64,000 nucleotides of DNA, from NCBI RefSeq assembly GCF_040938485.1, contig NW_027270938.1, forward strand, positions 1,674,001 to 1,738,000, given 5' to 3'. Position 1 is the first letter of the stretch. Each line of letters begins with the position of its first letter. Below the pieces are notes generated by a model. That model made no database searches. It was not told where the DNA came from and was given only the letters and a program-made list of their open reading frames with translations. This DNA is from Diadema antillarum. Its lineage: Eukaryota. Below are positions 4,989 to 49,484 of the stretch, piece after piece. The position numbers and the translations under genes were made by a program.

Positions 4989-6374
4989 TTAATTATCTTT
5001 ACAAAACATCTTCCTAATTGTTTGCCTTAATAGCGGCTGGGCTAGAGTGTATGCAAGGGGATTCAGTGGGCTGTTGCAGTAGGATAGCCATCTTCCGGAC
5101 TCCCGAAGCTGCACCTCAAAGGGAAGGCTGGTAGTCCAGGCCGGCGCTGCTGAGCGGAGTATGATATTCAGGGTATTCAGGAACCATGTCAAGTAAAAAA
5201 TGACGACTAAAAAAGCCAAAGTGCGCAAGGCCTTGCTACCGTCTGAGATCCTCTTCTCGCCCTGATTTTTCGCTGTGGTGATTCCCTCTAAAAGAGGATC
5301 TGGGCTGGCCTTACGTGCTGTTACAGAGCTGCGTTCACCGACGTTCAATGAGACTGGAACCCGGTAGCTGTGGCTCACATCGATAGAACTGAGAGCATTA
5401 CATCTATCCTTGGGGACAGTGCAAGACAATGTATGCTCGCCATCGGGCGGCGAGCCGATCACTGAACCAGATTTTTCTTGCTCTAAAGTGCCAAAAGTGT
5501 CTACATCAGTGGGGGTAACCTTCTCCTTTTGCCGTCGTGCAATGATTTCTTGCCCGTATATGGAAGGAATGTTCTGTTTCACTCCATTTGTTTTCACTTT
5601 TGTGGAAATCTTGTCGTCAGTGACCCTGGGAAGGGAAATATGATGGCTGCCTTTGAAAACCGTTTTTCCCTCCTTCTCGACTTCGGTAGCAAACGATACA
5701 TGATCAACCATTCGGGTACGGCTGGCAGATTTCGCGCGGTAGAAGATTCGAACAGAGAGCACTAAAATCACGCCAAATGGGATACCAGCTCGCAGGACTA
5801 TGATAACGAGCATTGATGCAACATGCTCAACATAGTTTGGATGACAAAACCCTGAAGGCACCACACGCGTATTGGGACTAACCAGGTCCCAAATTGTGCT
5901 CAAACTCATCCAAATAGATAAAGGAATCAACCAGGTCAACACGTTGACAACTATGGCCACCTTCTTGCTCTTCTTCCGGTAGTGAAGGAGTGGGTATGCG
6001 GTTGCTAGGTAACGGTCGAAGCAAATTACCACCGTCCCAAAAACCGATACGCCGGGGAGAACAAGTTGGATGCCTACGAAAATATGACAAAAAGTTTGTC
6101 CAAGAATCCACGTGCGATCAAAAGCAAATATCAACCCACGGATGGGCATACAAATGAAGCCAACCAACAGATCTGCTATCGTTATGTTAATGATGTAGTA
6201 ATTGTTGTATGTCCGTAACTTCTTTTCACAGTAGAAAGCTTGTAGGACCACCAAGTTTACTATTACGGTGATCAGAGAAATGGAAAATAAGACACCTGCT
6301 TGCCAAGAGATATCCAGCGTTGCCTTGAGAACTGTTCCTCCATGGACATCGATCTTACTTGTGACGTTGTTCAT
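4989..6374 (-). CDS. Class A GPCR A1 (aminergic-like orphan receptor), 461 aa
   Basis: Seven hydrophobic helices with N1.50, IADLLVG (D2.50), C3.25, DRY, W4.50, ECL2 Cys, P5.50, long ICL3, W6.48 and NPLAY. Predicted 5'-UTR intron 6385-7068 (AG|GTATGA ... TTACAG). Confidence 0.95.
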   Translation of the reverse strand: MNNVTSKIDVHGGTVLKATLDISWQAGVLFSISLITVIVNLVVLQAFYCEKKLRTYNNYYIINITIADLLVGFICMPIRGLIFAFDRTWILGQTFCHIFVGIQLVLPGVSVFGTVVICFDRYLATAYPLLHYRKKSKKVAIVVNVLTWLIPLSIWMSLSTIWDLVSPNTRVVPSGFCHPNYVEHVASMLVIIVLRAGIPFGVILVLSVRIFYRAKSASRTRMVDHVSFATEVEKEGKTVFKGSHHISLPRVTDDKISTKVKTNGVKQNIPSIYGQEIIARRQKEKVTPTDVDTFGTLEQEKSGSVIGSPPDGEHTLSCTVPKDRCNALSSIDVSHSYRVPVSLNVGERSSVTARKASPDPLLEGITTAKNQGEKRISDGSKALRTLAFLVVIFYLTWFLNTLNIILRSAAPAWTTSLPFEVQLRESGRWLSYCNSPLNPLAYTLAQPLLRQTIRKMFCKDN

Positions 6375-7562
6375 GGCGTCCTCACTGTAATCATGTGAAT
6401 GAAATTAGAATTAAATCATAATTAATTTTCCGCAAACAGCCTTCATATCATTCTATCCTTCACAGTTCGAATAACTACGACTGAGAAAATGCATGGATCT
6501 GTACGTACAAAGTAGAAGCAAAAATCTTAAGAAATCCCTGTATTCTCTTTTTAAGAAAAAGTGACATTCATCGATTGTCAGCTCCCAAAGCGTTCTTCGT
6601 TTTTAACCACTGCATGGTAAAGTCAGGGATTTCTCGACCAAAGGTATGTGAATTTCACCTTATTGGTGAACGGAGTACTAATGGCTAGAATTTGTAGAAT
6701 AAGGAAGCAACCTAACACCAGATTATGTAATTTCCTGTAAAGTAAGAATATAATTCCGCTAATTCAGCTATCTAGAAATAATTTTTTTTATCAAATCGTA
6801 GTACTGACACCACATAAAGATATTGAATAATATCGGACATAAAACATGACTCTTTGAATGAAAAAATGCCAAAAAATGACTCTTCATTTCAAATGAATAC
6901 CTTGGAAGCTAGTAATCGTTATTGAACGTGTCATACTATCAGTTGAGATCATAGAAACATACCAAATTCTTATTCACACTCTTTAATACATAACTCGATT
7001 TCGCAACTTCGAACTAAAATAGGATTACAAAGTATCAATCATTTATCCATACAAAGTATCAATCATACCTGGTTTAAAAATTCTTAGAAGAGCAAAACGT
7101 GATCGCAGTAAACTGTCAAGTCAAAGAGGCCGGGAGAGTAGTGAAGCATCGACTGAGCTCTTATTCTCTCGGGGAAACGTATTTAACATCCATTTTTCAG
7201 GATTTCGTTGCAAAAGTAATGATTTACATCAAATAATAACCTAGTTACTCCTCCATCACAACCCATACTTCCAATCCACCGGGAAAGGCGAGAGTCATAC
7301 ATTCAGAAAACTAATCTTTTTCCCGGCCTGTTGCATTTCTGCAAATGATTCTTGCTACAGCTCAGCCATTGATGAACAGTCGTTGATGTAACCCGCTACT
7401 GATCAATATTCATAACCTTTTTCACCAATCGGAGTCATTTCTTGTCCCCAAGAATTCTAGTGTCAATGGTGCCGCTACTTTTTATTTCCGTTATAAAAAA
7501 TATGCTTCGAGCAACATGCCCATTTACTCACTGATGCTGTTACGTAAATTCTTCACACACAC

Positions 7563-7614
<52 letters not shown>

Positions 7615-9451: not shown

Positions 9452-9486
<35 letters not shown>

Positions 9487-12400
9487 GTTCATATAGGGGC
9501 TACATGTTTTGCATTTACATGTATTTTGAAGTGTAACGTTCTTTGTCAACCTCATCAACATGCTGTTTCGAGCTTTCATGAGTGCAAAAGCTACGAAGCA
9601 AATAAAATAATTTTGCATTACACGTCCCATACCGAAGTAGCCTTCAATGGGGTTTCATGAAGTTGTTCTAAACAAGATAATGTAGATACTTAACTGCATC
9701 CCAGTCCCTAACATCGAACGGTAGACACTCTGTCTCGAATTTTGCGTAATGTCCAGTAATAAATACCAAAAAGTGTGAAGTTTGTTTCACGATGTAAAGA
9801 GATTGAACATATCTCTTACAAACGAACCGTTCTTTCGGCATGCACCATGGTAGTTTCATAAACAGAAATACCTTCCGGTAGACTGTACTCATAGATAACC
9901 TAATAATAACAGTTGATAGGTAAAACATAACACTGTTTGGATAATTACGTTTTGTGAAACTATAGAAGATTTTATAGTTAAACTTTATACATACACAAAA
10001 AATTCAATGAAAACTGGACAAAGAATTGATAGAAATAAATTTAATGCATTATTGGATTTCCATTACCAATGAATCACCTCAAACTGTCAATTACCACAGA
10101 TTCTAACAAGACTCATTAAAGCATTTACAACACAATCAAATCTACGCTTTGCCTTTGTGTCAAAATGTGTCCTGTCCCTTTGTATTTGGATAAAAACCTG
10201 AGTAAAGTTGCAAGAAAGAGAGTTATGCCATGTTGTAGGTCATACACATGTTACATTATATTGTTATTAATGTGTGCCAATATTAATGGTTATTATCTGA
10301 CTCTCATGAATGATCCAAAGTTACAGCGCAGTTTTGATTTTTTATCGCTATGTCTGTGACAGACCGCATATATGTTTATATACTATTATATAGATATATA
10401 GATATATATATATATGCCTCAGCAAAAACGCCTTTGCTAACTATACAGCTTTGATCATTACATAGCCCACCTGTCTCAAAATTGGCACTTTTTACAAAAC
10501 ATCTTCCTGATGGTCTGTCGGAGCAGCGGCTGGGCTAGAGTGTAGGCGAGAGGATTCAGTGTGCTGTTGCAGTAGGATATCCATCTTCCGGATTCCCGGA
10601 GTTGCACCTCAAAGACAAGGCTGGTGAACCAGGCCGGCGCTGCGGAGCGGAGTATGATATTCAGGGTATTCAGGAACCATGTCAAGTAGAAAGCAACGAC
10701 TAAAAAAGCCAAAGTGCGCAAGGCCTTGCTACAGTCTGAGATCCTCTTCTCGCCCTGACTTTGTGCCGTAGTGATTCCCTCTAAGAGAGGGTCTGGCTGG
10801 GGCTTAGGTGTTGATGTTACAGAGTTGCGTTCACAGATGTTCATGGACATTGGGACCCGGTAGCTGTGAGTTACATCAGTAGAACTGAGAACATTACATC
10901 TATCCCTTGGGACAGAACATGACAACGTATGCGCGCCATCGGGCGCCAAGCCGAGCACCGAACCAGAATTTTCTTCTGAATACCTTCCTTGCTCTGGAGT
11001 GCCACAAACTTCTAGATCTGTAGGGGGAACCTTAGCTTTTTGCCGCCCTGCAATGATTTCTTGACCATATATGGAAGGAATGCTTTGTTTCACTTCATTT
11101 GTTTTCACTTTTGTGGAAATCTTGTCCTCAGTCTCCCTGGGAAGGGAAATATGTTGGCTGCCTTTGAAAATTGTTTTTTCCTCTTTACCTGCTTTGATCA
11201 CGAAAGACACATGATCAACCATTCGGCTACGGCTGGCAGATTTCGCGCGGTAGAAGATTCTGACAGAGAGCAATAAAATCACGGCAAATGGGATAACAGC
11301 ACGCAGGAATACGATGACGACCATTGATGCAACGTGCTCAGCATAGTTTGGTTGAAAAAACCCTGAAAGCACCACACGCGTATTGGGACTAACCAGGTCC
11401 CAGATTGTGCTCAAACCCATCCAAATAGATAAAGGAATCAACCAGGTCAATAGGTTGACAACTATGGCCACCTTCTTGCTTTTCTTCCGGTAGTGAAGGA
11501 GTGGGTATATGGTTGCTAGGTAACGATCAAAGCAAATTACCACGGTCCCGAAAACTGAGACTCCAGGGAGAACTTGATTGATGCCAGTGAAAATGTAGCA
11601 GAAAGTTTGTCCAAGAATCCAGGTGCGGTCAAACGCGAACATAAGCCCACGAATGGGCATGCATATCAAGCCAACCAACAGATCTGCTATCGTTATGTTA
11701 ATGATATAGTAGTTATTATACGTCCGTAATTTCTTTTCAGAATAGAACGCTAGAAGGATTCCCATGTTTACTATTACGGTGATCAGAGAAATGGAAAATA
11801 AGACACCGCCTTGCCAAGAAATCTCCAGCGTAGCCTTGAGAACTATTTAGTCTGGTAGGAATGGGGGGTCCCCATGCACCCCCCGAACACATTTTTTTAA
11901 CTTACTTTTTTGTAACCCTTAGGGTGTCTAGTTAATGATTTTTTTTGTTCCCAAGAAAAAATCGTGTCCCATGGGGGTCATTGGCGGCCATCTTGGCAGC
12001 CATCTTGGATTTTCAGGGAAAATCATTATCTTCCATAACTTTTGAACTACACAGCATAAAATTATAAATAAAGCATTTCTTCAGGGTAAACGTGACACGA
12101 GGAATCGATTGCAATGGTTATTTACGTGATTAAAGCAAGTCTGAAACAAGAAAAGCCTAAGAATATGCAAATTTCGGTGTCATTTTCACCGAAAAATACC
12201 TAAATAGTTTAACTTTTGAATTACACAACATACAGGGACAAATAAAACAGTAATTCAGAGTTAATATGGCATGAGGAATCGTTTGAGAGAGTTATTTACA
12301 TGATTAAAGCAAGTTACATACAAGAAAAGTCCAAACATGCGAGGAAAACCAGTGTCGTTTACTCTAGAAATATTCCCAAGTAGTCTATATACATACATAC

Positions 12401-12964
12401 ATGACAATCTCATATCTCCTAAGAGTAAACTAACCTCTTTTTCTTAACAGTCTGGTAGGAATGGGGGGTGGGGGGTCCCATGCACCCTCCTTTTTGTATC
12501 CCTTAGGGTGTCTATTTGATTCTTTTTGTCTCCAAGTGAAAATCGTGTCACATGGGGGGGGGGGGGGGTCATTGGCAGCCATCTTGGATTTGCGAGGAAA
12601 ATCATTAATTTCTATAACTTTTGAAGTTTCCAACATACAAGGACAAATAAATAATTTCTCCAGGGTAAATTTGGCATGAGGAATCGATTGACATTGTTAT
12701 TTACATTTTCACAATTATGATACATGAAAAATCCAAACATGCGAATAAAAAAACAGTGTTGTTTGCTCTGCCCAAATAGTCCATATACATACATGACAAT
12801 TATATACCTCATATGATTGACTAACCACTAAAGTCTAGGAATGGGGGATCCTCATGCACCCTAAATTTTTGTATCCCTTCAAGGTGTCTATTAGATGATG
12901 ATTTTTTTTTTTGTTTCCAAGTAATAATCGTGTCGGGGGGGGGGGGGGAGTCATTGGCGGCCAT

Positions 12965-14170
12965 TTTTTATTTGAGAGGAAAATCAGTAAATCACACATT
13001 GAAAGTGTGAGTGTCCGGGCATTGAAAGTGTGAGTGTGAGTGTGAGTGTCCGGGCACTAGCATTGGTATTCTATATTTTTTCCCAACCGGTGTATCTCAA
13101 AATAATTACATGTATATTGTTATAGAATAGTATATAATTTACTCATTATTTGTCTAGCGATCCACGTCCGACAAGCTATGCTTTTTAGTGGATCACTATT
13201 TTCCATAATCGAATTTATTTTCCGCTCGCCCACGAAGTATTTATACAGTGTTTTCCTAAATATTGTACATGTTATATGTTGTTCTATAATATGTCTCGTA
13301 TATATATTACATGAATCTTATGCAAACGTTTGAACAATATTTCATCACATGTATACTTTGTACTATGTTTTTTGATTTTCGATGATTGGAAATAAACTAT
13401 GATTGAATTGATTGAATTGAATTGATAAGGTTGCCTCTGCCAGGTGGGAGCAAGGAGAAATCCACCTTGGATTTGGTCATCAGTTGCTCGCCCTCTCCCA
13501 CCATCTGTTTCAGCATGATGCTGCGAACGCCATTATGATAGACTTCTCCCGGACCTCGCTATACATTTTAGGCATGTGAATGCTTCCATGTCATCTGTCA
13601 CCTCTGGCTCCACAGACCACCCATCACCAAGATTTGTGAGGAAAAAACACTCAACTTGGCATATTGTATAGTCATATTCTAATATTTTAGTAGTGTTTAT
13701 TATGATATAATACTGAGCAACTTATTAGATTTCAGTAAAATACTTCTGAAATCACGAAATCAAACAACTCTCACCTGAATGCTATGTGGTATATGGGGTG
13801 GCTTTTGTTGATTCTTTAGGGGTCCAACTTTTCCCAACCCATTAAGGCACTTTAATTGTTACATCTTCCCCGGTAGTCCAGGTATTTTGGTATACAGTAT
13901 ATGAGCTCCCGTTGATTCTATATAAATGCAAGTTAATTGACATTGACAACCTGGCAATACGTGACAGTCCGTTTATCAAGAAAGATACTACATTGTAGAA
14001 TGGATTAAGCAAGGACCAAGGGGATCAAGGAACTGTGTGTCTGGATCCCTCACCAAAGCTACCTTGTACCTAAGTTTAGCAGCGCACTTGAGGTAAAGCA
14101 CGACCCTGGTGTCCGTCTTCTTATACTGGTTAGACAGTCACTCATGGATATCGCGCCATTGTCTCTTGGA
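12965..14170 (-). pseudogene. Second, inverted decayed copy of the same transposase 3' region, left arm
   Basis: The reverse complement reads SNQYKKTDTRVVLYLKCAAKLRYKVALVRDPDT, ggggaagatgtaaca...ggacccctaaagaatc and NLGDGWSVEPEVTDDMEAFTCL...KQMVGEGEQLMTKSKVDFSLLPPGRGNL. It is colinear with 14270-15050. Confidence 0.75.
13045..13423 (+). mobile_element. 5'-truncated LINE 3' end nested in the left arm of the Academ-like element
   Basis: Interrupts the inverted transposase copy. Has AATAAA at 13391 followed by a (TTGAA)n-like tail. Confidence 0.5.
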
Positions 14171-14269
14171 ACATATCATTGTGTAAACAAAAGGAATGTA
14201 ACAGAAATCACATTCTCTGAAGCTTAAGTGATTCCTGTTACATTCTTTTTGTTCACCTAATTACTCATC

Positions 14270-15302
14270 CCAGGAGACAATAAGCTCTATCCATGAGCTG
14301 CCGTCTAACCAGGAGAAGGACACCAGGGTAGCGCTCTACCTCGAGTATTCCACTATTAAGCTTGGGTACAAAGCAGCTGTGGTAAGGACACCAGACACAG
14401 ACATTTTCTTGATCTTCTTACGCCATGCTCACTCCGTCACCCTCACTATCCTCCTTTATAAATGGACTGTCGAGCATTGCCAGATTGTGAATGTTGTTGA
14501 ACTGGCATACTGAATCAAAGGGAGCGGGCTACTGTACCACAATACTTGGACGACATGTGCTTACAGGGGAAGATGTAACAAGTGCCTTCAAGAGTAGGGG
14601 CAAAGTCGGACCCCTAAAGAATCTACAAAGCCACCCCATGTACCATACAGCATTCAGGAGAGAGTAGTATGACATTATAATCTCTGCAATATTTTACTGA
14701 AATGTGGTAAATTGTTCAATATTACATTATAATGAACACTGCAGAAATCTTACAACATGACTTTGAAATGTGCCAATGTTTTTTCGTCCTCCACTTAAAC
14801 CTTGGAGATGGGTGGTCTGTAGAGCCAATAAGAGGTGACAGAAGACATTGGAGCATTCACATGCCTAATGTATGACCATAAGAGGTGGAGAAGTCTATTT
14901 ACAGCAGCATCATCCAAAGCTGTGTGCAGCTGCAGCAGATGATGGGAGAGGGCGAACAAATGACGACAAACTCCAATGTGGATTTTTTCATGCTCATATA
15001 CACCTTGCAGAGACAACCTTATCCCACACATTAAATGTGTGACCCATCGCCTTGCCATCTTAAAGAGAGCTGACCAACCATTCTTCTGGTGCTCTGTATA
15101 TGACTCCTTTGATTCTGGACAAGGATGGCAGAAAGTAGCCTTTGTTATGATGGAGCCAGTGTGGTCAAGTGGCCCTATCTTTCCGACTTCCCTCATTGAC
15201 TTGCTTCAGAAAATTACTGAGGAAATGAAGGAGGATGAAGAAGAGGACCCAGACATTGATTACAATGATCGTTTTGATGATGACTACTGGTATAGAAATT
15301 AA
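14270..15302 (+). pseudogene. Decayed 3' part of Academ-type transposase (XPG/FEN1-like motifs), right arm
   Basis: Fragments HELPSNQEKDTRVALYLEY...VVRTPDTDIFLIL, GEDVTSAFKSRGKVGPLKNLQ, NLGDGWSVEP and PCRDNLIPHIKCVTHRLAILKRAD...GQGWQK...EPVWSSGPIFPTSLIDLL with an acidic tail. Broken by frameshifts and stops. Confidence 0.75.
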
Positions 15303-18300
15303 AGAAGTGTGAAATGAAAACCTGATATATCGCATAACCGCTTCTGTGGTTTGTACAGTTACACAGGGTGAGCATTCAGAATACTTTTTAAGAAAAGTGA
15401 AGTCATATTGTGTTACTTTATATTTTTTCAATATACGTTAATTCCATACTTCATGAAAAGCATATACACATGTCACAAACGTTGAAATATATAGATGATG
15501 ACTGGCGGCGGAGGGAACATACCCAATGTTCCACCCGAAGGGTTTGAAATGCTATTGAGGGAGGTTATGAGTGCGCTGCGGTCCATCACGTGGAAATGTT
15601 TTCCCATGGGAGAACATTACAAGAATGTTCGCCCGTGGGCCAACATAACGAATGTATACTTCCATCACGTGACTGTGTTCAGCCAATCACTAATCGGTAT
15701 GTGACTAACCCTTTCAAAATATCATTATGTCTTTTGATAATAGCTTGAATATTGCGTCTTATATCAGACAACTTTTAACAGAATTCGAAAGGAAACTTAA
15801 TTCCAATCAATGTGAACTTGAATTGAATGCATACAGGATGTAAGCACAAAAGCGATTCACATGCAAATATTTCTAAATTAAAGTAGCAGCAATCCACATT
15901 GATATACAGTCCCTATTCACAGGCTAGATTTCCGGCTGTCAAATGAAATGTTTCTCTTTTTGTTTTCGGACAATAAACTTTAAACAAATACATTTGAATG
16001 AACTGCTTTTTTAACTTGAGAATAAATGAAACCATTTTGGCATCTAAATTTTTGAAATCGGCTCGACATTTTGACACAGTGATTGTTTCCTTGAATATAT
16101 CCCAACTCAAACTCGTTTTAAATATAAAATGAAACGAAATTGAACGCGCACAAAGAGTATCAAATTTAAGTTCCAGTTTTATCTTTGTCCATTAGTCACT
16201 TTTAAGTGTTGTGATCAACATTATTATCATGTGTCACCTCTTTTTAAGGGTATTTGCATATGAATTACCACAGTGCTTACATTCTTATTCTATTTCACCA
16301 AGTGAGGGGTGACAATGCTTGAAATTAATTTTCTCTTCAGATTCTATTTAATGTTTTTGATACAAAACAAAAAAGGCCTATTTGGGCAATGATCTAAAGA
16401 CAGAGTTGTTAGTCACTTTTGTGAGGTATGCAATTTGTCATGTATGTAGCATGAAATATTTTGGCCATTTCCAGAGTAACAGCACTTAATTTTTCAGTTT
16501 TGGGACATTTCTTGTGTCAAATTTGCTTTCATTATGTAAATGACAATCTCAATTGATTCCTCATGCTGTGTTTCGTCTGAAGAAATGTTTTATTTGTCCC
16601 TGTATGTTGTGTATAGTTCAAAAGTTGAACTATTTGGGTACTTTTCAGTGTAACCGATACAGAATTTATCATATTTGGGACTTTTCTTGTATCAAGCATT
16701 TTTTAATCATGTAAATAACCATCTCAGTCGATTTCTCATGTCACATATACCCTGAAAAAATGTTTTATTTTTCCTTGTATGTTGGAAACTTCAAAAGTTA
16801 TAGAAACTAATGATTTTCCTCGCAAATCCAAGATGGCTGCCAATGACCCCCATGTGACACGATTTTCACTTGGAGACAAAAAAAAAATCAAATAGACACC
16901 CTAAGGGATACAAAAATGAGGGTGCACGGGACCCCCCCCCCCCTTTCCTACCAGACTGTTAAGAAAAAGAGGTAAGTTTACTCTTAGGAGGTATGAGATT
17001 GTCATGTATGTATGTATATAGACTACTTGGGAATATTTCTAGAGTAAACGACACTGGTTTTCCTCGCATGTTTGGACTTTTCTTGTATGTAACTTGCTTT
17101 AATCATGTAAATAACTCTCTCAAACGATTCCTCATGCCGTATTAACTCTGAATTACTGTTTTATTTGTCCCTGTATGTTGTGTAATTCAAAAGTTAAACT
17201 ATTTGGATAGTTTTCGGTGAAAATGACACCGAAATTTGCATGTTTTTAGGCTTTTCTTGTTTCAGACTTGCTTTAATCATGTAAATAACCATTGCAATCG
17301 ATTCCTTGTGTCATGTTTACCCTGCAGAAATGCTTTATTTATAATTCTATGCTGTGTAGTTCAAAAGTTATGGAAGATAATGATTTTCCCTGAAAATCCA
17401 AGATGGCTGCCAAGATGGCCGCCAATGACCCCCATGGGACACGATTTTTTCTTGGGAACAAAAAAATTCATTAATTAGACACCCTAAGGTTTACAAAAAA
17501 GTAAGTTAAAAAAATGTGTTCGGGGGGTGCATGGGGACCCCCCATTCCTACCAGACTAATTCCTCCAGGGGCACTGATATCACCTGAACGGTTATTCATG
17601 GTTCCCTCACTGTATGAAATAAGAGTATAGAAATGATCATTATTAATATACCGCACCCAGCTTTACAATCATTTTTAGGGAATTCTTGTGCGTTCGTGCA
17701 TTTTAGAATGAGAATTATGGCTATGTATAGGTACAGAGTACAAGCGAAAATCGGAAGAGGTCCATGTTCTCCTTGGAAGAAAAATTACTTGTAATCAATA
17801 ACATGCTTCCAGGCTGTTTTCTAGTTCAGACCTTTTATGATCAACGATATGCGTATTACACCAGTGTACACGTCGCTAGTGAAGTGAATTTTTTAGAAAG
17901 GAAACGAGCTCCAGATTGCGTCATGTCACGTTGTTAATCAAATTATACAACCTCATATTTAGCTGCAAAAATATCAAAACGGAATATCAACATTTTGACT
18001 TTAAAGCAAAATTGGAGTTGAAGTATGGCTCTTGTAATAAACATCATTTCAAATAAACATCTCGGAAACCAACAGTTACCACGTAACATACTATTTATAT
18101 ATTGATTTAGTTGAGATAACAGAATCGTTAAACATGCAACTCATCTTTATATTGTGGAATGCATTCTTTGATTCTGCGAATTAGAATTAGAACAGAATTG
18201 CTCGTCCGAACAATAATCATTTCAACTCATGAGAACAAATTCATCTTACCGAGTTTAGTAAGCCTTAGATCCCTTAGAAGAGCAAAAGCATGAAGCATGG

Positions 18301-18480
18301 CCGTCAATCGGTGGAATTAAAGGTACCGGTGGCAGGTGCCGCTGAAGTCCAGGAGAGCACTGAAGCACTTTGAGAGCCCGCGATTTACGGGGAAACGTTT
18401 CCAACCTCCGGGTATTTGCAGAAATAATTCTGATGATGTAACTTAAATAATTACACTTATACCTCTTCCATCACAATCTC

Positions 18481-18498
18481 TTTTATAATCCAACCAAT
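18481..18498 (-). promoter_or_regulatory. Candidate core promoter of A2: TATAAAA plus adjacent CCAAT
   Basis: Minus-strand TATAAAA at 18487-18481, ~230 nt upstream of the conserved donor at 18249. The same arrangement is found in A4. Confidence 0.5.
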
Positions 18499-33069: not shown

Positions 33070-33126
33070 TACATATATTATGTATTATATATTTTTTACA
33101 TATGCATATATATATATATATATATA

Positions 33127-38170: not shown

Positions 38171-38225
38171 TTCAGTTATCATTTTCATATCGATGCTGAC
38201 TTAGTAATCGGGTTGTTTAATTAGT

Positions 38226-39509
38226 TTATACTGCTAGGCTCGTGGAGAACATTTTTAAGATCACACGACGAATGAGAGGTTGGGCCACGGCATAGGCCAG
38301 CGGGTTGATGGTGCTGTTACAGAACGCTATCCATCGGACAGATTCCCTCAATTGCATTATGTAAGGCAGACTTGTGATGAGTGTCGGTGAAATAGAACGT
38401 GAGATTAGGACAACTGTGCTCGGCAGCCATGTAATAAAAAAGGCTATGACCAGGAGAAGCAACGTACGCATGGCTTTTGCCCCATCGGCGCTTCCCTTCC
38501 CGCGCTTCATTTTAGTCCCAACTCTTTCAGCAAAACTCAGACGAGCGTTAACGGTTGGTTTATCAACCGACCCTTGACCGGAAAGATGGTCTTAGGAATT
38601 AACCGAAATCGTGAAAATCTTTAGGCCACTTGATTGAGGTTTATTGCATATTTGCTTATCATGCAATCCGCGTTTCAATTGTGAAGATGTACAGTTTACA
38701 TGTTCAGCTTCGACGTTCGATGAAGGTGTGTCAGTGGAACGTTCCGGGCTTTTTGCTTCCGCCTCATACATGATTTGGTCTTGGCTGACTGAAAATTTAT
38801 CATCTCTTTTCGTTGCTGGCATAGATCGAATGCTTCTGCCTCCGAGACGCTTCTGCCCGGCGGATTTTGCCCGACGGTAGATCTGAACACTCAAAATCGC
38901 GATCGTCACGAATGGGATGCATGCACGAAGAAGCACAGTGATAGTGCTTGAGATGAAGTACCTGGAGTAATTTGGATCGCACCATCCAGACCGTGTCACC
39001 GCACCGCTTGGTCGGGCCAAGTCCCAAAACGTGCTGATACTCAACCAAATGGAGCATGGAATTAACCAGGTCAACGCATTGACGACAACCGCTGTCTTCT
39101 TAGTCTTCCATCTGTAGTGATGCAGAGGATACGACGTTGCTAGGAAACGATCGAAGCATATCACAACCACGCCAAACACGGACACACCGGGAAGAGCGTT
39201 CTGCACCCCTATGAAGATGTAGCAGAAGGTCCCGCCCAGCATCCAGGTGCGATCGAAGGCAAATATTAGCGCCCGGATTGGCATGCAGACAAGGCCTACC
39301 AGAAGGTCAGCCACCGTCATGTTCAATATGTAGTAATTGCTGTAAGTCCGGAGTTTCTTTTCGGTGCAAATTGCCAGAAGAATGAGCGAATTTACAAAGA
39401 TTGTGATCAAAGAAAGTCCAAATAAAGTACCTGCTTGCCAAGTAAACGTCAGTCCCACTGCCGTGGTCAGAATAAGCGTTTGACTCGAGTCGTTGATACT
39501 TTGGTTCAT
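38226..39509 (-). pseudogene. Class A GPCR B1 with an in-frame nonsense codon in ICL3 (would be 427 aa)
   Basis: TAA at 38592-38594 where B3 has CAA and B2 has CAG (NS-Q-DHLSG). The frame continues for 27 codons into the 94-aa TM6-TM7 ORF. Predicted intron 39534-40435. Confidence 0.9.
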
Positions 39510-40631
39510 AGTGTTGTTGAGGTCGTTCAGGCTCTAGATTTAAAAAGGGAAGAAGAACCACGGAGACATATTTAACAAGAATGTTTCTTCCACAATATTG
39601 CCCTGCATTTCATACGTATTCTCTCTTTATTACTTATACAACCAGCGGAATATCTTCCATTCTAAGAATATCACCAAATCACAATAATTCCGAAAAAAAA
39701 ATTGTTGCTGTATTACTAATTCTCAACCTTAAAATATATTTGTAATATAGCAGTCATCGCATTATTGGATGTGGTAAAATGTCCATTATCTTTCAAATTC
39801 TCGAGAACTGGAAACTCCTAAATTAATTGAATTAAACTTGCAAAAGATTGATTTCAGAATTATTAACGTTAATGATAAAAAGTGAAAAAATTACCATTTG
39901 CTCATACACTTTTTTTTTTCAAAACATTGGTTCCGACTTTACTTATTGAAAGCTTTGAATCGATTCTAATAACAAAGAAGAAACAAACTTATTGGTTTAT
40001 CTAACAAAGCGATGTTTTATTCTGCCACTTTACATTTAAGACAAGAGAGACTTTCTATGATGTCGAGATCACTTCCTAATATACAGATCGAAATAAGGGC
40101 AGGAGAAATCAGTCATGAAAAGAAAGAAGAAATAACAAGCAAATGTAGCTTTATATTTCTAGCTGTTCCTGATGTCATAAGATTTCAGTTTTCTGTAGAA
40201 TTTGTTTTTTTCTTTTTTCTGTTCATTTTTTTTTTCGGAAGGAGATATTTGCAGACCCATGTACATTCATTATGTAAATAATCACTGAAAGAAAATGATA
40301 GGCCTACAAAACAGCCTACGTGAGCCTAATTCAATGAAGGTCTGTGTAATATCGTCATAAAACAAAACTCTGACAATTGCAATTAAAAAAAAAAACTTCG
40401 TGAAGCGCACGGCTGTAGATTAGCAAAGTACGTACCTCACTGAACAGGACAGAATATACTGTGAAGTAATTCCCTGGAGTACAGCCTGCGCAGATAATGC
40501 TGTGTCAAATAGGATCAACCAGCCTCAGAGTGGAGAAGTAATATCTGTTCTCAGGTCTTCATCTCTGATCGCTTTTTTTGTATGAAACATTGTTTGATAG
40601 ATGGGAGCAATCTCTTGCATCCTTGCCCCTG

Positions 40632-40636
40632 ATTGG
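40632..40636 (-). promoter_or_regulatory. CCAAT box (CCAATCAG) of B1; equivalents at 46488-46492 (B2) and 51323-51327 (B3)
   Basis: cctgattgg is conserved in all three B units, ~200 nt upstream of the conserved G|GTACGT donor. Confidence 0.55.
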
Positions 40637-41392
40637 TCAATTATAGCCATCCAATGGCATAAGATGTGTAAGACTAGAATTTTGCGTGTGTATATTTGAA
40701 ATAGAGCGGGATTATGAAGGAAAATATTCGCGGCATTATTTATATCATATTCATATTCACATATGCGTAGCACCCTCTCGCATAAGGAAATAGTGTGATC
40801 ATAGTCATAGCGACCTCGATGGCCCCGGTAAGAAAGAGAAATGTCGGAAGATCATTGGCTGATGCCAGATTGACAATAGCTGATGTTATGTAGTTACCAT
40901 GCAGGCAACTACATCAATATCGTCTTTTAAATTTGAAATTTTCTGTCAAGCATTTACCGATGCGAAAGGAAGCGCTATCCATATTGCATTAGGAATGTCA
41001 GAGATGATATTTGTCACAATTGCTTTCTATTACCAAGGAGTTTAAAGAAATGGAATCACAACAGTCTTTCTTCCCTTAAAATAGCCTTGATTCCAATATC
41101 ATTTTAAGTATGAGCAAAAATGCATCGGTCTCATAGATAGGAAAGTAGTTCATCTATGTCTCACTGCATAATCACCATCCCCTCTCTAAAAAAGATCTAT
41201 GTCTTTGAAACGGTAATAATTTTAACCAACTATACTTAAATATGAAAGATGAACGCGACATAAAGACAAAGACACGAGAATGCGCATATAGAAATTGCGC
41301 AAAGATTGATGAAATTAAAACTTTAATTACTCGACTGGGGCATGTCTATTCACTATTGCGACATTATTATTAACTAATAAAGATCTGTACTT

Positions 41393-41450
41393 GGGGTGCT
41401 GTGACATGGTGGATAAGACTCCCGGCTTCCGATCGGGGAACCCTGGTTCA
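41393..41450 (+). mobile_element. tRNA-derived SINE head, truncated
   Basis: ggggtgctgtgacatggtggataagactcccggcttccgatcggggaaccctggttca has an A-box-like motif and breaks off at the B-box. Paralogous copy at 52104-52161. Confidence 0.55.
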
Positions 41451-43359
41451 GGGCCGTCGGAACAATGGGGGAGGGGGAGGGACTGTAAGAGTAATGAAAG
41501 GAACCTGGCGGTGGAGGGAGATTTGCATATTCAGCATTGAAAGTCAACGGGACAGTGCATAATTTACTTGGAATATTTGGACGATTCTCTGTCAAAAAAA
41601 AGCAAGAATAATTTCCGCATGTCGGGTATTATTAGGGGCAAATTGAAAAGCTTAACCTCCCCTAATATTTCAAGGGGGGCAACTGCCCCCTCATTCCCTG
41701 ATCGATCACTTGCATATAAGAGGGATCTCTTGCATTTTCAGCATGGAAATTAAACAATCAACGAGAGCTTTTGCATATTTAGAATTCAACATAACTCGTA
41801 AGCACATTTTGATGTAACTTGGGAAACTGTCGTTTCCCCATAGTGTTTATGTTGAGCGGGACCGAGGATGGGGAGGATGGGGAGGGTGGGGAGGGTGGGA
41901 GGTGGAGAATTCCCTTTCCATTAGTGGGAGCTTTCGCATTTTTAGAATTAAAATTCAACGATTTGACTCACACTTTCGGTGGAATAGCTGAAAATTTGCA
42001 TCAAATGTAATAAGTCTGTTATCTAATGAAGGGGGGGCTATACACCGGCTTGGGAGAGCTTGTTGGAGGAGACATCTTTTTGTTTTGTTTTGGTTTTTTT
42101 TTGTTTTTTTTTTTGTGATTGCAGTGGCTTATCTGGAAATTGCAAATCCCTCTAAGGTTAGTTATGTTCAATGCATGAAGGGGAGGCTATACCAGAGCAG
42201 GGATAGGGAGTGGAAGGGTGTATCCCATACCCTTCCCATTCGAAGAGAATTTTAAAACTTAAATGAAGTTACGTTTTACAGACATTTTTGAAAATATTTG
42301 AAAAATTGAAGAATGAAAAAAGTGTACAAAATCTGCTTGTATTTGGTTGGGAAACAAGCAGGGAGGGGTGAATTGAAAAGGGGTGTTCCTCTGACATAAG
42401 CCACCTTTGTTGAAATAGAAGTGGCAAATTTTGTGCACACTTCGTGATGGACTATTCGGTATTTTTTCTATAAGTGTAATGAAGGAAACCGAACGGGACA
42501 GGGAGATTGTACATTTTCAGGATTGAAAATCAACGATCTAGTGTACAATTTAAGTCAAATATTTGGTCAATTTTCTACCAAAAAGCAAAAAGTTATTTGG
42601 GGCAAAATAAAATGCCCCCACCCCCACATATTTTCATGGGGGGGGGGGGGGCAATTGCTCCCCTTGTCCACCAAGATCGACTCTCCTATGTATGAAGGGA
42701 GCTATCACATTATTAGAATTCAAATTTTCAAAAAAAAAAAGTCTCTTAAGCACATTTGGATGTAATTTGGGATATTGTAAATCAAACAATAGGGGGGATG
42801 GGGAGGGTCGATTTAATGAAGCTATCCCCTCAACACCGCTCAACAAGAAGGAACTTCTGCATCTTATTAATGGATATCTACACCGCTACACCGCTATTTG
42901 GAAAATTTTCCACTAAAATCAAGGAAAATGGAATGTCTGAAATTATTTGGGGGCAAAAGGATATGTTTGCTCCCCCCTCCAGATAAAAATATGGGGGGGG
43001 GGCTCTTTTGCTCCCCTTGTCCCCCAAGGTCAACTCTCCTGAGTATGAGAGGGAGGTATTGAATTTTTTAAATTCAAATAAAGATATCTCGTAAGCACAT
43101 TTTGATGTAATTTGGGATATTGTCAATCCCAAAATGTACTAAATGTATGGAAGAAAACCAAGGGGGAGGGGGAGGGTTGATTTAAAGAAGATAATCCCCT
43201 CAACAAAAGGGAACTTCTGCATTTTATTAATGGATATCTATACTGCTATTTAACTGCAGGCAGGACTACGGTGTGAGACGACACGAAATCTTTGATTTCT
43301 TTAATTTTCTATCAATTCTTTCTTATCGATGCTGACTTTATAGTGTTGGGTTCGTTAGT

Positions 43360-44649
43360 CTATTCTGACAATCTCGTGCAGACCATCTTTAAGATGACAC
43401 GGCGAAAAAGAGGTTGAGCCACGGCATAGGCCAGCGGGTTGATGGTACTGTTACAGAAGGATATCCATCGGACGGATTCTCGAAGCTGTATTGCGTAAGG
43501 CAGACTTGTAAGGATCGTCGGTGAGATTGAAAGTAGGACTAGAACGATGGTGTTTGGTAGCCATGAAATAAAAAAGGCTATGAGCAGGAAAGTTAAGGTA
43601 CGCATGGCTTTTGCCCCGTCGGCGCTTCCCTTCCCGCTCTTCATCTTAGTCCCAATTCTATCAGCAAAACTCAGACGAGCGTTAACGTTTCCAATATCAC
43701 CCTGCCCTTGTCCGGAAAGATGGTCCTGGAAATTAACCGAAAGCGTGAAAATCTTAAGTCTACGCGAGTGAGGTTTATTGCATATTTGCTTATCATGCAA
43801 TCCGCGTTTCAATTGTGACGATCCACTGTTTTCATGTTCAGCTTCGACGTCCGATGAAGGTGTGTCAGTGGAACGTTCCGTGCTTTTTGCATCCACCTCA
43901 TACATGATTTGGTCTTGACTCACTGTCGAAGGAAATTTGTCATCTCCTTTCGTTGCTGACATAGACCGAATGCTTCTGCCCCCGAGACTTTTCTGGCCGG
44001 CGGATTTTGCCCGACGGTAGATCTGAACACTCAAAGTCGCGATCGTCAAGAATGGGATGCATGCACGAAGAAGCACAGTGATAGTGCTTGAGATAAAGTA
44101 CCTGGAGTAATTTGGATCGCACCATCCTGACCGTGTCACAGAGACCCTCGGTCGGGCCAAGTCCCAAAACGTGCTGATACTCAACCAAATGGAGCAGGGA
44201 ATGAACCAGGTCAACGCGTTGACGACAACCGCTGTCTTCTTAGTCTTCCATCTGTAGTGACGCAGAGGATACGACGTTGCTAGGTAACGATCGACGCATA
44301 TCACAACCACGCCAAACACGGACACACCGGGAAGAGCGTTCTGCACCCCTATGAAGATGTAACAGAAGGTGCCGCCCAGCATCCAGGTGCGATCGAAGAC
44401 GAATATTAACGCGCGGATTGGCATGCAGACAAGGCCTACCAGAAGGTCGGCCACTGTCATGTTCAATATGTAGTAATTGCTGTAAGTCCGGAGTTTCTTT
44501 TCGGTGCAAAATGCCAGAAGAATGAGCGAATTTACTAAGATTGTAATCAAAGAAAGTCCAAACAAAATACCTGCTTGCCAAGTAAACGTCAGTCCCACTG
44601 TCACGGACAGAATGAGCGTTTGACTCGAGTCGTTGATACTTCGGTTCAT
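43360..44649 (-). CDS. Class A GPCR B2, 429 aa
   Basis: 7TM motifs: D2.50, C3.25, DRY, ECL2 Cys (GWCDPNY), SWLP and NPLAY. Predicted 5'-UTR intron 44668-46287. Confidence 0.95.
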   Translation of the reverse strand: MNRSINDSSQTLILSVTVGLTFTWQAGILFGLSLITILVNSLILLAFCTEKKLRTYSNYYILNMTVADLLVGLVCMPIRALIFVFDRTWMLGGTFCYIFIGVQNALPGVSVFGVVVICVDRYLATSYPLRHYRWKTKKTAVVVNALTWFIPCSIWLSISTFWDLARPRVSVTRSGWCDPNYSRYFISSTITVLLRACIPFLTIATLSVQIYRRAKSAGQKSLGGRSIRSMSATKGDDKFPSTVSQDQIMYEVDAKSTERSTDTPSSDVEAEHENSGSSQLKRGLHDKQICNKPHSRRLKIFTLSVNFQDHLSGQGQGDIGNVNARLSFADRIGTKMKSGKGSADGAKAMRTLTFLLIAFFISWLPNTIVLVLLSISPTILTSLPYAIQLRESVRWISFCNSTINPLAYAVAQPLFRRVILKMVCTRLSE

Positions 44650-45526
44650 AGTATTGTTGTTCAGGCTCTAGATTTAAGAAGGGAAGAAGAGCCATGAAAA
44701 CACATATAACGAAAATGTTTCTTCCAAAAAATATTGCCATGTATTTCATTCGTATTCTCATTTTATTGCTTATACAACCACAAAAAATATCTTCTATTTT
44801 GAAAATATTACCAAAATGCAATAGTTACGAAATAGAAAAATGTGTTGCTGTATTACTAACTCTTAACCTCTTAAATTAGTCATAGAACAGTCATAGCATT
44901 ATTGGATTTGGTAAAATGTTCGTTATCTTTCAAATTCTCTAGAACTGGAAACTCCATAAAGTTATTGGATTAAACTTGAAAGGATTGATTTCAGAATTAT
45001 TAACGTAAAGATAAAGAATGAAAGAATAACCATTTGCCCATACATTTTTCTTTCAAAACTTTGGTTCCGACTTTAGTAATTGAAAGCTTTGAACCGTTTT
45101 TAATAACAAAGAAGAAACCGACTTTGTTGTTTATTTAACAAAGCGATGCTTTACTCTGCCACTTTACTTTACATTCAAAGGTCATGTTTACCTTTAGGAG
45201 CAGTGATTTGAAAATGTTCAGGATATCACTTCTGATGCATACGTGTAGGTCAGTTGTATCACAAAACGTCTTACCACATTAATTTTTTGTAATAAAGCCT
45301 AAAAAAAAAACAAGAGATAACACTATTTTTCTCATTAAACCGTAACTGTAGACGGTTTAATCTGGAAACATTTTCATCATAACATTGTTAACATTTTGTA
45401 TATTTAGCAATACTTAACATCGATTATACATTGGTTGTTTCTATCCCTAACTCACATTTTAGATTTAGTTTGAAGCACTAATGCTGGGTTTTTGTTTCAC
45501 CTGCAAATGGTAGATTATGCTTATAA

Positions 45527-45893
45527 AGGGGATGGCTAGCAACTGATCACTGAGAATCAGTGGGAATGCTGGGGGATGATTGTTCCAATCCTTGTGGGAT
45601 TCATTTAAGAGTACATTATATATCTATTGTTGTGGGAAAATTATTTACTTCAGAATGGTCTCATATTCAAGTAATGTGCAGTTAATCGTTAACGATCGCC
45701 CCGTCACTGTACAGGCATGCTAACCTGGAAACATTAAACTGCACATTACTTGAATATGAGACCATTCTGAAGCAAATAATTTTCACTCAACAACAGATAT
45801 AAAATGTCCCTTTAAATGAATCCCACAAGGATTGAAACAATCATCCCTCAGCATTCCCATTGATTCCCACTGATCAGTTACTAGCCTTCCCCT
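45527..45893. mobile_element. Kolobok-type foldback MITE (367 bp) in the B2 5'-UTR intron
   Basis: ~165-bp inverted arms aggggatggctagcaactgatca... / ...tgatcagttactagccttcccct. TTAA at 45894-45897 and ATAA on the left. Absent from B1 and B3. Confidence 0.85.
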
Positions 45894-46543
45894 TTAAGAT
45901 AAGAGAGGCTTTCTGTAATGTCGAGATCACTTCCTGATATAAAGATCGAATTAACGGCAGAAGAATTCAGAAATGAACCAAAAACACATGAAATTCGCAG
46001 CAAATGTTACTGATATTTTTAGCAGATCCTGATGTCATAACATCACAACTTTCTGTAGAATGTGCTTTTCCTTTTTTATTACTTATGAAGGAAATGTACA
46101 GCAGACCCATGTACGTCCCTTATATGTAATAAAAGAATCACTAAAAATGAAACGATAGGCCAACAAAACAGCCTCCTCAAGCCTAATTCCATTGATGTGT
46201 GTGTAATATGGTCATAAAACAAAGCTCCGACAATTGCAATAAAACATTTTCGTGAAAATTAAAGCTGTAGATTAGCAACGTACGTACCTCACCAAATAGG
46301 ACAGAATAGACTGTGAAGTATTTCCCTGGAGTATAGCCTGCGCAGACAAAACTGTGTCAAATGGGATCAACCAGCCTCAGAGGGGACGAGTAATATTATG
46401 TTCTCAGGTCATCATCTCTGATTGCTTTTTGTATCAAACATTGTTTGAAAGATACGATGAGAGCAATCTCTAGTAACCTGGTCCCTGATTGGACAATTAC
46501 AGTCATCCGGTGACATGGGATTTATGTGATTAAAAGTATGTGT

Positions 46544-46593
<50 letters not shown>

Positions 46594-48194
46594 GTTTGAA
46601 ATAGAGCGGGTTTATGAGGGGAAATATTCGTGGCGGCTTACATTTCCTATAATTTTGTTAACTGTTTTTCGTTTACTTCTGAGTAGCACTCTTTTCGCAT
46701 GAAGAATTAGTGTGATCATAGTCATAGAGACCTCGATGGCCCCAGTAAGAAGGAGAAATGCCAAAAGATCATTGGCTGATGACAGATTGGCAGTAGCTGA
46801 TGTTACGTAGTTGTCAAGGCAAATAGATCAATATCGTCTTTTCCACTTGAAATTTTCTGTTTAGCATTTATCGATGCGAAATGAAGCGCTATCCACATTG
46901 CATTAGGAATGTCAGGGTTAATGTTTGTCACAATTACTTTCTATTACCAAGGAGGTTCAAGAAATAGAATCACAGCAGTCTTATTTCTCTTTAAACTAGC
47001 CTTGATTCCAATATTATTTGAAGTATGAGCAAAAATGCATCCGTCTCATAGATAGGAAGGCAGTTCATTCATGTCTCACTGCATAATCACCATCCACACT
47101 CAAAGGAAGATATATGTCTTTGAAATGGTAATAATTTTAACCACCTCCACTTTAACATGAAAGATGAACGTTACATAAGGGCAAAGACACGAGAATGCGC
47201 ATATAGAAATTGCGCAAAGATTCAGGAAATTAAGAATTTAATTGTCAACGATTATAATGATAATAATCAACGATTTGACGCATACTTTCGGTGGAATAGC
47301 TGCATCAAGAGAAGTGTAATAAGTCTGTTACCTACGAAAGGAGACTAACCGGCTTGGGAGAGCATGTGGGAGGAGGTATCCTTTTGCATTTTTGTGATTG
47401 CAGTTCAACGATCTCGTGCACACGTTTGGTGGCATATCTGGAAAATTGTAAGGTTAGCTGTGGTGATGCATGAAGGGGAGGCCATACCAGAGCAGGTATA
47501 GGGAGTGGAAGGGGGAATCCCAAACTTTTCCATACGAAGAGAATTTTGGAACTGAGATGAAGTTATGTCTTATACGCGTTTCTGAAAATATTTGGAAAAT
47601 TGCAGAATGAAAAAAAGTGTACTAAATCTATTTCATTTGGTTGGGAAACGAGCGGGGAGGGGTGAATTGAAAGGTGGTGTTTCTCTGACATGAGCGACCT
47701 TTTAAATTGTTGAAATAGAAGTGGCAAATCTTGTGCACACTTCTTGATGAAATATTTGGTATTTTTCAGTCTCCAAAGTGTCCTATAAATGTAATGAAGG
47801 GAACCTAACAGGACAAAGAGATGGTGAATTTTTCGAATTGAAATTTTCATGGGGCAACTGCTCCCCTTGTCCCCCAAGATCGACCCTCCTGCGTATAAGA
47901 GGGAGGTATCGCATTTTTAGAATTCAAATAAGAAAATCTCTTAAGCACATTCTTTTGGGATATTGTCAATCCCCAAAGTGTACTAAATCTATAGAAAGGA
48001 ACCAAGGGGAAAAGGGTTGATTTAAAGAAGATGTCCCCTCCCGCACGAAGGAACTTTCGGATTTTATCAATAGTTTCTACACTGCATGCAACTGTTGGAC
48101 TACGGTGTGAGACGATTGTACGAAATCTTCAATTTCTTTAATTTTCTTTTAGTTATTTCATATTGATGCTGCCTTAGTGTTGGGGTTCGCTGGT

Positions 48195-49484
48195 TTACTC
48201 TGACAGGCTCGTGCAGAACAGTTTTAAGATGACACGACGAATGAGAGGTTGGGCCACGGCATAGGCCAGCGGATTGATGGTACTGTTACAGAAGGATATC
48301 CATCGGACAGATTCCCTCAATTGCATTATGTAAAGCAGATTTGTGATGAGTGTCGGTGAAATAGAACGTGAGATTAAGACAACAGTGCTCGGCAGCCACG
48401 TAATAAAAAAGGCTATGAGCAGCAAAATCAAGGTACGCATGGCTTTTGCCCCGTCGGCGCTTCCCTTCCCGCTCTTCATGTTAGTCCCAACTCTTTCAGC
48501 AAAACTGAGACGAGCGGTAACGGTAGGTATATCAACCGACTCTTGACCGGAAAGATGGTCTTGGGAATTAGCAGAAAACGTGAAAACTTTAAGGCCACCT
48601 GAGTGAGGTGTATTGCATATTTGCTTATCATGCAATCCGTCTTTCAAACGTGAAGATGTACAGTTTTCATGTTCAGCTTCGACGTTCGATGAAGGTGTGT
48701 CAGTGGAACGTTCCGTGCTTTTTGCATCCACCTCATACATGATTTGGTCTTGGCTGACTGTCGAAGAAAATTTGTCATCTCTTTTCGTTGCTGATATAGA
48801 TCGAAAGCTTCTGCCTCCGAGACTTTTCTGGCCGGCGGATTTTGCCCGACGGTAGATCTGAACACTCAAAATCGCGAGCGTCACGAATGGGATGATTGCA
48901 CGAAGAAGCACAGTGATAGTGCTTGAGATGAAATACCTGGAGTAATTTGGATCGCACCATCCAGACCGTGTCACCGAAACCCTTGGTCGGGCCAAGTCCC
49001 AAAACGTGCTGATACTCAACCAAATGGAGCATGGAATGATCCAGGTCAACGCATTGATTACGACCGCTGTCTTCTTAGTCTTCCATCTGTAGTGATGCAG
49101 AGGATACGACGTTGCTAGGTAACGATCGAAGCATATCACAACCACGCCAAACACGGACACACCGGGAAGAGCGTGCTGCACCCCTATGAAGATGTAACAG
49201 AAGGTCCCGCCCAGCATCCAGGTGCGATCGAAGGCGAATATTAGCGCCCGGATTGGCATGCAGACAAGGCCTACCAGAAGGTCAGCCACCGTCATATTCA
49301 ATATGTAATAATTGCTGTAAGTCCGTAGTTTCTTTTCGGTGTAAAATGCCAGAAGAATGAGCGAATTTACTAAGATTGTGATCAAAGAAAGTCCCAATAA
49401 AGTTCCTGCTTGCCAAGTAAACGTCAGATCTACTGTCATGGACAGAATAAGCGTTTGACTCGAGTCGTTGACACTTCGGTTCAT
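48195..49484 (-). CDS. Class A GPCR B3, 429 aa
   Basis: 7TM motifs as in B2. Predicted 5'-UTR intron 49509-51127. Confidence 0.95.
   Translation of the reverse strand: MNRSVNDSSQTLILSMTVDLTFTWQAGTLLGLSLITILVNSLILLAFYTEKKLRTYSNYYILNMTVADLLVGLVCMPIRALIFAFDRTWMLGGTFCYIFIGVQHALPGVSVFGVVVICFDRYLATSYPLHHYRWKTKKTAVVINALTWIIPCSIWLSISTFWDLARPRVSVTRSGWCDPNYSRYFISSTITVLLRAIIPFVTLAILSVQIYRRAKSAGQKSLGGRSFRSISATKRDDKFSSTVSQDQIMYEVDAKSTERSTDTPSSNVEAEHENCTSSRLKDGLHDKQICNTPHSGGLKVFTFSANSQDHLSGQESVDIPTVTARLSFAERVGTNMKSGKGSADGAKAMRTLILLLIAFFITWLPSTVVLISRSISPTLITNLLYIMQLRESVRWISFCNSTINPLAYAVAQPLIRRVILKLFCTSLSE

Follow-up and report, generated by a model that had tools for sequence, protein, structure and literature searches.

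The window that we analyzed, 64,000 nucleotides (nt) of the Diadema antillarum genome on contig NW_027270938.1, carries seven intronless genes for class A G protein-coupled receptors (GPCRs), arranged in tandem, and the subject of this report is the arginine-rich ligand pocket that they share. When open reading frames (ORFs) of >250 amino acids (aa) were considered, exactly seven were present, every one on the minus strand and at the place reported in an earlier note on this DNA, and all seven matched the Pfam family 7tm_1 (PF00001) with E values from 1e-33 to 1e-45. Tblastn searches of the window with A1 and B2 returned the same seven loci and no further fragments. The genes fall into two groups, A1 to A4 and B1 to B3, with protein identities of 73 to 89% within and 44 to 47% between groups (Table 1). 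The earlier note had spoken of seven receptors alike; all seven loci do carry the residues that it listed, but only five of the genes (A1, A3, A4, B2, and B3) are intact, A2 and B1 being disrupted.

Pocket positions were numbered in two ways, by HMMER alignment to the M3 muscarinic receptor (4daj) and by counting, in all seven proteins, from the anchors DRY/R3.50, P5.50, and NPxxY/P7.50. In the alignment to M3, Gln fell on Asp3.32, Leu on Tyr3.33, and Pro on Ser3.36, and Arg fell on Ala5.46, Trp7.35, and Tyr7.39. Anchor counting gave results in line with this alignment and agreed exactly with the earlier reading of the 3.32/3.33 pair (Q-L in A1, N-Q in A2 to A4, Q-N in B1 and B2, Q-H in B3) and of P3.36, R5.46, R7.35, and R7.39, which are common to all seven proteins, as are E7.36, W7.40, and Y/F7.43. 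Two further arginines had been overlooked, namely R2.61, present in all seven, and R6.58, present in six (B2 has Leu). Position 6.51 is Asn or Ser, 6.52 is Thr, and 5.42 is Ile or Thr; neither Asp nor Glu occurs at 3.32, at 5.42, or at any other canonical pocket position but 7.36. W6.48 and NPxxY are present in all seven proteins and DRY in six, B1 carrying DRF in its place. The cysteine pair of C3.25 and extracellular loop 2 (ECL2) is likewise present in six, the exception being A2, in which the ECL2 Cys is Phe. An AlphaFold2 (AF2) model has seven transmembrane (TM) helices plus helix 8. Since the seven genes share these residues by descent, they do not amount to seven independent observations, and what counts is how widely the residues are conserved in the sea urchin clade, not within the seven genes.

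Two side observations concern pocket and core positions. The B genes have kept P6.50, a residue that is otherwise almost universal, whereas every A gene has Leu there; Leu6.50, in the motif TWFLN, also occurs in D. antillarum P0004 and D. setosum P0006, and the genes that carry it are nonetheless under purifying selection. In addition, the allele of B2 on the other haplotype (P0002, 99% identical) has His3.33 where the window has Asn3.33; this reflects either allelic variation at a residue that may contact the ligand or gene conversion from B3.

Table 1. Receptor genes and other features of the window (ICL3, intracellular loop 3; aa, amino acids).
Feature	Position	Strand	Description
A1	4989..6374	-	Intact intronless GPCR gene, 461 aa; Q3.32-L3.33; P3.36, R2.61, R5.46, R6.58, R7.35, E7.36, R7.39; Leu replaces P6.50
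A2, 3' part	10476..11847	-	Codon 14 onward; N3.32-Q3.33; ECL2 Cys replaced by Phe
Transposon	11848..17558	.	5.7 kb, inserted in A2 codon 14
A2, 5' part	17559..17599	-	ATG (17599) and first 13 codons, MNNRSGDISAPGG
A3	23876..25099	-	Intact, 407 aa; N3.32-Q3.33; same arginines as A1
A4	30195..31598	-	Intact, 467 aa; N3.32-Q3.33; same arginines as A1
B1	38226..39509	-	Full-length homologue of B2/B3; one premature stop in ICL3
B2	43360..44649	-	Intact, 429 aa; Q3.32-N3.33; P6.50 present; Leu6.58
B3	48195..49484	-	Intact, 429 aa; Q3.32-H3.33; R6.58
Three ~5-kb tandem units	37822..52165	.	37822-41454, 42933-47243, 47859-52165

Summed over 36 canonical class A pocket positions, the pocket charge of the window proteins is +5/-1 (+4/-1 in B2), the lone acid being E7.36. 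The corresponding means are +3.5/-0.9 for the sea urchin clade to which these proteins belong and +0.4/-1.6 for relatives that bear Asp3.32. The reversal of pocket charge relative to these Asp3.32-bearing relatives, which the earlier note had proposed, is real.

The scaffold that carries this pocket is aminergic, as had also been claimed. More specifically, the best PDB sequence matches are the muscarinic receptors M3, M5, M1, and M4 and the histamine receptors H3 and H1, the best fold matches are M5, M4, H1, and M1, and, among the matches listed, all 60 sequence matches and 50 fold matches are amine receptors. The window proteins share with muscarinic receptors a short N-terminus, a long ICL3, a short tail, W4.57, W6.48, W7.40, Y/F7.43, DRY, and NPxxY, and muscarinic-signature proteins are among their nearest Asp3.32-bearing relatives. 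In contrast, the agonist site is altered. Six residues contact agonists in M4, M2, and M1 (D3.32, Y3.33, Y6.51, N6.52, Y7.39, and Y7.43; PMC9126879), and five of them are changed (D3.32 to Q/N, Y3.33 to L/Q/N/H, Y6.51 to N/S, N6.52 to T, and Y7.39 to R). With 7.43 as the sole contact retained, classical binding of acetylcholine or another amine is, judging from the sequence, very unlikely. The outer vestibule differs as well: it is lined by W7.35 and 7.36 in muscarinic receptors (PMC9126879), and W7.35 is Arg in the window proteins. Histamine receptors (H3, H4, and H1) likewise rank high among both sequence and fold matches. However, H4R binds histamine via D3.32 and E5.46, the latter forming an ion pair with the ligand (PMC10589313), whereas the window proteins have Q/N3.32 and Arg5.46, such that both histamine anchor positions are directly charge-reversed. 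The earlier note had predicted that automated annotation would apply muscarinic or histamine labels, and the closest database proteins (86 to 100% identity) are indeed D. antillarum entries named "muscarinic acetylcholine receptor M2-like" and "histamine H1 receptor-like," several of the NCBI names being of the H1-like kind; public databases thus already contain these proteins but misname them.

A profile built from 16 relatives was used to query 1.84 billion representative proteins, and the matches were aligned back and scored at the key columns. About 30 representatives, corresponding to ~30 clusters at 50% identity across the sampled sea urchin genomes, carry a common signature consisting of R2.61, F3.28, Q3.32, N3.33, W4.57, D4.65, R5.46, W6.48, E7.36, R7.39, W7.40, and Y/F7.43. 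The named signature proteins come from D. antillarum, D. setosum, Lytechinus pictus, L. variegatus, and Strongylocentrotus purpuratus only, and a few matches are ENA/Logan entries without an organism name; the signature clade is so far known only from sea urchins. In the next-nearest groups, 3.32 is Arg, Ser, Asn, Glu, Lys, or Gly; the sea cucumber Apostichopus is represented in one of them. Further out lie proteins with the full muscarinic signature (D3.32, Y3.33, S/C3.36, A5.46, Y6.51, N6.52, W7.35, Y7.39, and Y7.43). A literature search, whose reach did not extend to the original paper on surreal-GPCRs, returned no paper on this family.

A phylogeny with aminergic and orphan relatives, which the earlier note had named as a check, placed the family among muscarinic-like proteins. 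This maximum-likelihood tree (97 rows, 277 core columns) was obtained by quick search, with support from the Shimodaira-Hasegawa-like approximate likelihood ratio test (SH-aLRT) only. The signature clade comprises 37 rows from Diadema, Lytechinus, and Strongylocentrotus (SH-aLRT 95), and its sister (support 97) is a Diadema group that has R2.61, E7.36, and R7.39 but Thr5.46. Both nest in a 66-row clade without Asp3.32 (support 99), and this clade together with four further rows forms a 70-row clade (support 99), the fork of which with the muscarinic-type clades is unresolved. R5.46 and R7.39 are present in 35 of the 37 signature-clade rows; the two rows in which R5.46 is missing are P0012 (Ala) and P0081 (a gap, on a long branch). 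R7.35, R6.58, and P3.36 are mostly restricted to the Diadema cluster. The tree, which is of unrooted quality, suggests that R2.61, E7.36, and R7.39 may have appeared first, R5.46 next, and R6.58, R7.35, and P3.36 last, in the Diadema cluster. The signature clade descends from muscarinic-type amine receptors and lies within a larger echinoderm radiation of muscarinic-like orphans without Asp3.32. Its sibling orphan groups belong to the same 66-row clade, are mislabelled in the same manner, and are often in tandem, with the range of residues at 3.32 given above and a mean pocket charge of about +1.2/-0.9. In contrast, the combination of R2.61, R5.46, and R7.39 occurs in the signature clade only, which is set apart by these three arginines and, in the Diadema cluster, by a net pocket charge of +4. 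Many members of the signature clade from Lytechinus, Strongylocentrotus, and some from Diadema (P0017-P0023 and P0044-P0047) have neither C3.25 nor the ECL2 Cys, the conserved class A disulfide having been lost as a pair in these lineages.

To characterize selection, pairwise ratios of nonsynonymous to synonymous substitution rates (dN/dS) were calculated by the Nei-Gojobori method for the 7TM core and ICL3 separately. Within each group, the dN/dS of the core is 0.17 to 0.27, at synonymous rates (dS) of 0.22 to 0.36. The B1-B3 core reaches 0.39, a value that no pair exceeds and that would fit a recent decay of B1. Constraint is weaker in ICL3 (0.33 to 0.68) than in the core, and dS has reached saturation in comparisons of A with B genes. 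Purifying selection acts on the 7TM cores.

The earlier note had further pictured the cluster as a chemoreceptor array, tuned by variation in the pocket and loops, and this part of its proposal was not borne out. Within the two groups, the sites that vary show no excess in the extracellular half or loops (26/145 sites versus 18/120; Fisher p = 0.62), nor in the extracellular half under other groupings (Fisher p = 0.44 to 1.0). Likewise, D. setosum P0014, an orthologue, shares the A1-type motif (H3.26, V3.29, Q3.32, L3.33) with its Q-L pair, and D. setosum P0006 is of the N-Q type. As these subtypes are shared by both Diadema species, they are older than the split of the two. We therefore rejected chemoreceptor-style diversification, given that variable sites show no extracellular excess and no core dN/dS exceeds 0.39; the pattern is that of a small set of stable receptor subtypes, unlike a fast-diversifying odorant array.

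A broader proposition about role is that these receptors, like the surreal-GPCRs, form an environmental chemoreceptor array for many external cues and do not serve an endogenous transmitter or metabolite; we regard it as rather unlikely. The likeness is one of gene organization: the window genes resemble surreal-GPCRs (groups A to F) in being intronless, tandem, and lineage-specific. They have been duplicated together with their flanks, some are pseudogenizing, and both Diadema species have additional subtypes on the same contig or chromosome (P0004, P0058, and P0009-P0013). Large tandem GPCR expansions of sea urchins are expressed in tube feet and pedicellariae (PMC7042368, PMC5442662). The urchin family discussed here is, however, a modest expansion, its ~30 clusters comparing with hundreds of surreal-GPCRs. 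The purifying selection on the core, the lack of excess change in the extracellular half, and the conservation of subtypes from D. antillarum to D. setosum also argue against such an array, as does the long ICL3, which is typical of neurotransmitter-type receptors.

The best explanation of the arginine pocket, which we put forward tentatively, is that it would hold a ligand with a carboxylate, sulfate, or phosphate moiety. We take the arginines to occupy pocket and vestibule positions because these positions do so in the nearest solved relatives. The signaling core (DRY, W6.48, NPxxY, long ICL3, and short tail) has been retained and the amine site dismantled, with Gln or Asn in place of Asp3.32 and the tyrosine lid at 3.33, 6.51, and 7.39 gone. 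Arg5.46 and Arg7.39 would face each other across the orthosteric cavity, the entrance of which would be ringed by Arg2.61, Arg6.58, and Arg7.35. A small acid-bearing ligand could then be gripped between Arg5.46 and Arg7.39/Arg6.58. It might be di-anionic, or a zwitterion that uses Glu7.36 too, and its hydrogen-bond partners would be Gln/Asn3.32, residue 3.33, Asn/Ser6.51, and Thr6.52. Its binding would be expected to shift W6.48 and TM6 and so to activate a G protein.

A precedent for this arrangement is SUCNR1 (GPR91), for which Arg7.39 and Arg6.58 have been proposed as the succinate site (PMC5699910). The same pair is present, by residue identity, in six of the seven window genes, and both kinds of receptor have several arginines in the cavity; given this precedent, a carboxylate-, sulfate-, or phosphate-bearing ligand was rated most likely. 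SUCNR1 itself groups with P2Y-type receptors (PMC5699910), whereas the urchin family is nearest to amine receptors, and any likeness between them would be convergent. All five arginine positions lie within 45 degrees of the conserved face of their helix, as computed without those positions. Among other acid sensors, FFA1-3 use Arg5.39 and Arg7.35. We know of no counterpart of Arg5.46 or Arg2.61 in acid-sensing class A receptors.

It is also possible, although we hold this with less than even confidence, that a muscarinic-derived urchin clade was converted stepwise to acid receptors, converging on the Arg6.58/Arg7.39 pair of SUCNR1 and doing so for the first time on an amine scaffold. R2.61 and R7.39, common to the sister group, would have come first, followed by R5.46 and then, in Diadema, by R6.58 and R7.35. 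Candidate ligands in such a course would be dicarboxylates, acidic amino acids, and sulfated or phosphorylated small molecules.

Several observations weigh against a ligand of the anionic or zwitterionic kind. None of the helix conservation moments is significant by itself (p = 0.1 to 0.28), and the AF2 model, built from a 16-sequence alignment, has a mean predicted local distance difference test score (pLDDT) of 57, with 65 to 80 in the TM helices and 55 to 68 in TM6-7. The acids E7.36 and D4.65, each present in 29 of 35 rows, could neutralize arginines; an Asp directly follows the ECL2 Cys in the B genes, a Glu sits atop TM5 in the A genes, and the extracellular loops are about charge-neutral. 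In P2Y1 and GPR91, two pocket arginines (3.29 and 6.55) interact with an aspartate of ECL2 and not with ligand (PMC5699910). Finally, the A genes are without P6.50, which leaves their canonical activation open to some doubt.

These acids and the P2Y1/GPR91 arginines also speak for a second alternative, namely that the arginines are structural, engaged in salt bridges or hydrogen-bond networks with E7.36, D4.65, and the ECL2 acids, and that no anion is bound. The pocket would then be shaped or filled, and the receptors would have a neutral polar or peptide ligand or be constitutively active. Both E7.36 and D4.65 are nearly invariant beside the arginines, and the two clade members that have W or H at 2.61 are also without E7.36, a joint loss that hints at a 2.61-7.36 pair. 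We nevertheless consider purely structural arginines unlikely. The 36 pocket positions include four or five arginines but only a single acid (E7.36); R5.46 is situated deep within TM5, a turn above P5.50, and D4.65 is far from it, at the helix tip. Moreover, R5.46 is retained in the five members in which D4.65 is Asn, and both R5.46 and R7.39 are retained where E7.36 is Gln or Asn (P0015, P0016, and P0007).

The teleost non-classical TAARs offer a third comparison: as described in PMC4695389, they too derive from amine receptors, have lost Asp3.32, and form tandem expansions. Their acid anchor, according to the same account, shifted from Asp3.32 to Asp5.42 and amines are still bound, whereas the urchin family added basic residues and has no relocated acid. 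That the window proteins are still amine receptors, with Glu7.36 or Asp4.65 as a non-classical counter-ion in the manner of TAARs, is improbable: loss of Asp3.32 alone is compatible with amine binding on that account (PMC4695389), and E7.36 is conserved and W6.48, W7.40, and Y/F7.43 are retained, but a cationic amine would meet repulsion from the four or five arginines in and around the cavity, 5.42 carries no acid (Ile or Thr), and the aromatics at 3.33, 6.51, and 7.39, which make cation-pi contacts in muscarinic acetylcholine receptors (PMC9126879), have all been replaced.

As to the two disrupted genes, A2 is split cleanly within codon 14 by the transposon, and a 3-bp duplication (AAT as read on the gene strand) flanks the insertion. 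The element is palindromic, with inverted arms of ~900 bp that are 93.6% identical, and its termini are perfect inverted repeats consisting of TAGTCTGGTAGGAATGGGG and its complement. DNA upstream of the A2 5' part is homologous to DNA upstream of A4. Because the transposon parts the coding body from the start codon, A2 is probably a pseudogene. In B1, a TAA at 38592-38594 replaces the CAG of B2 and the CAA of B3 at the same site; with this stop in ICL3, TM6-7 are untranslated, and B1 is a recent pseudogene or null allele. In the NCBI model P0003, the 5' half of B1 is fused with the 3' half of A4, such that the stop of B1 is bypassed; D. setosum has a comparable model, P0008, in which a B1-like gene is fused with an A2-like one. 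Such chimeras are either annotation artifacts or the products of real read-through splicing.

Each of the three tandem units contains one B gene with flanking non-coding DNA, the units being 78 to 88% identical, and the A genes are likewise homologous to each other upstream and downstream. Compared with A1, A2, and A4, A3 has an in-frame loss of ~60 residues in ICL3. The cluster reaches past the window on the same contig or chromosome (P0004, P0058, and P0208; in D. setosum, P0009-P0013), and the window is part of a larger tandem cluster of intronless class A GPCR genes. At least two additional subtypes are present outside the window: one has a short ICL3 and keeps R5.46, R6.58, R7.35, and R7.39; another has His3.32 and has lost R5.46.

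The NCBI assembly of D. antillarum is an uncollapsed diploid (PMC13511894), and the B3 and B2 of the second haplotype are P0001 (98% identical) and P0002 (99% identical), respectively, both located on another contig. We considered whether the seven copies are a haplotype artifact and rejected this, as they stand in tandem on one contig and are 44 to 89% identical and are therefore true paralogues. Three sequencing runs from one study were likewise rejected as RNA evidence, as they cover intergenic DNA as evenly as genes, at ~3% divergence; they appear to be genomic DNA of other individuals. In these three runs, the summed contig depth over the intergenic interval 45200-46000 is 1e5 to 1e6, with many internal joints, and this interval is a very high-copy repeat or satellite-like element.

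These findings bear on how sea urchin receptors are named and used. Dozens of sea urchin genes are publicly named muscarinic, histamine, serotonin, adrenergic, or TAAR-like although classical amine binding is very unlikely for them, and work on echinoderm neurotransmission or on histamine-triggered settlement that is based on such names would be misled. If the receptors do bind anions, they would show that a scaffold can switch ligand class through reversal of its pocket charge and would be a convergent counterpart of the SUCNR1-type acid sensors. For a keystone reef grazer, the family also provides a short list of candidates, open to testing, for chemical signals as yet unknown.

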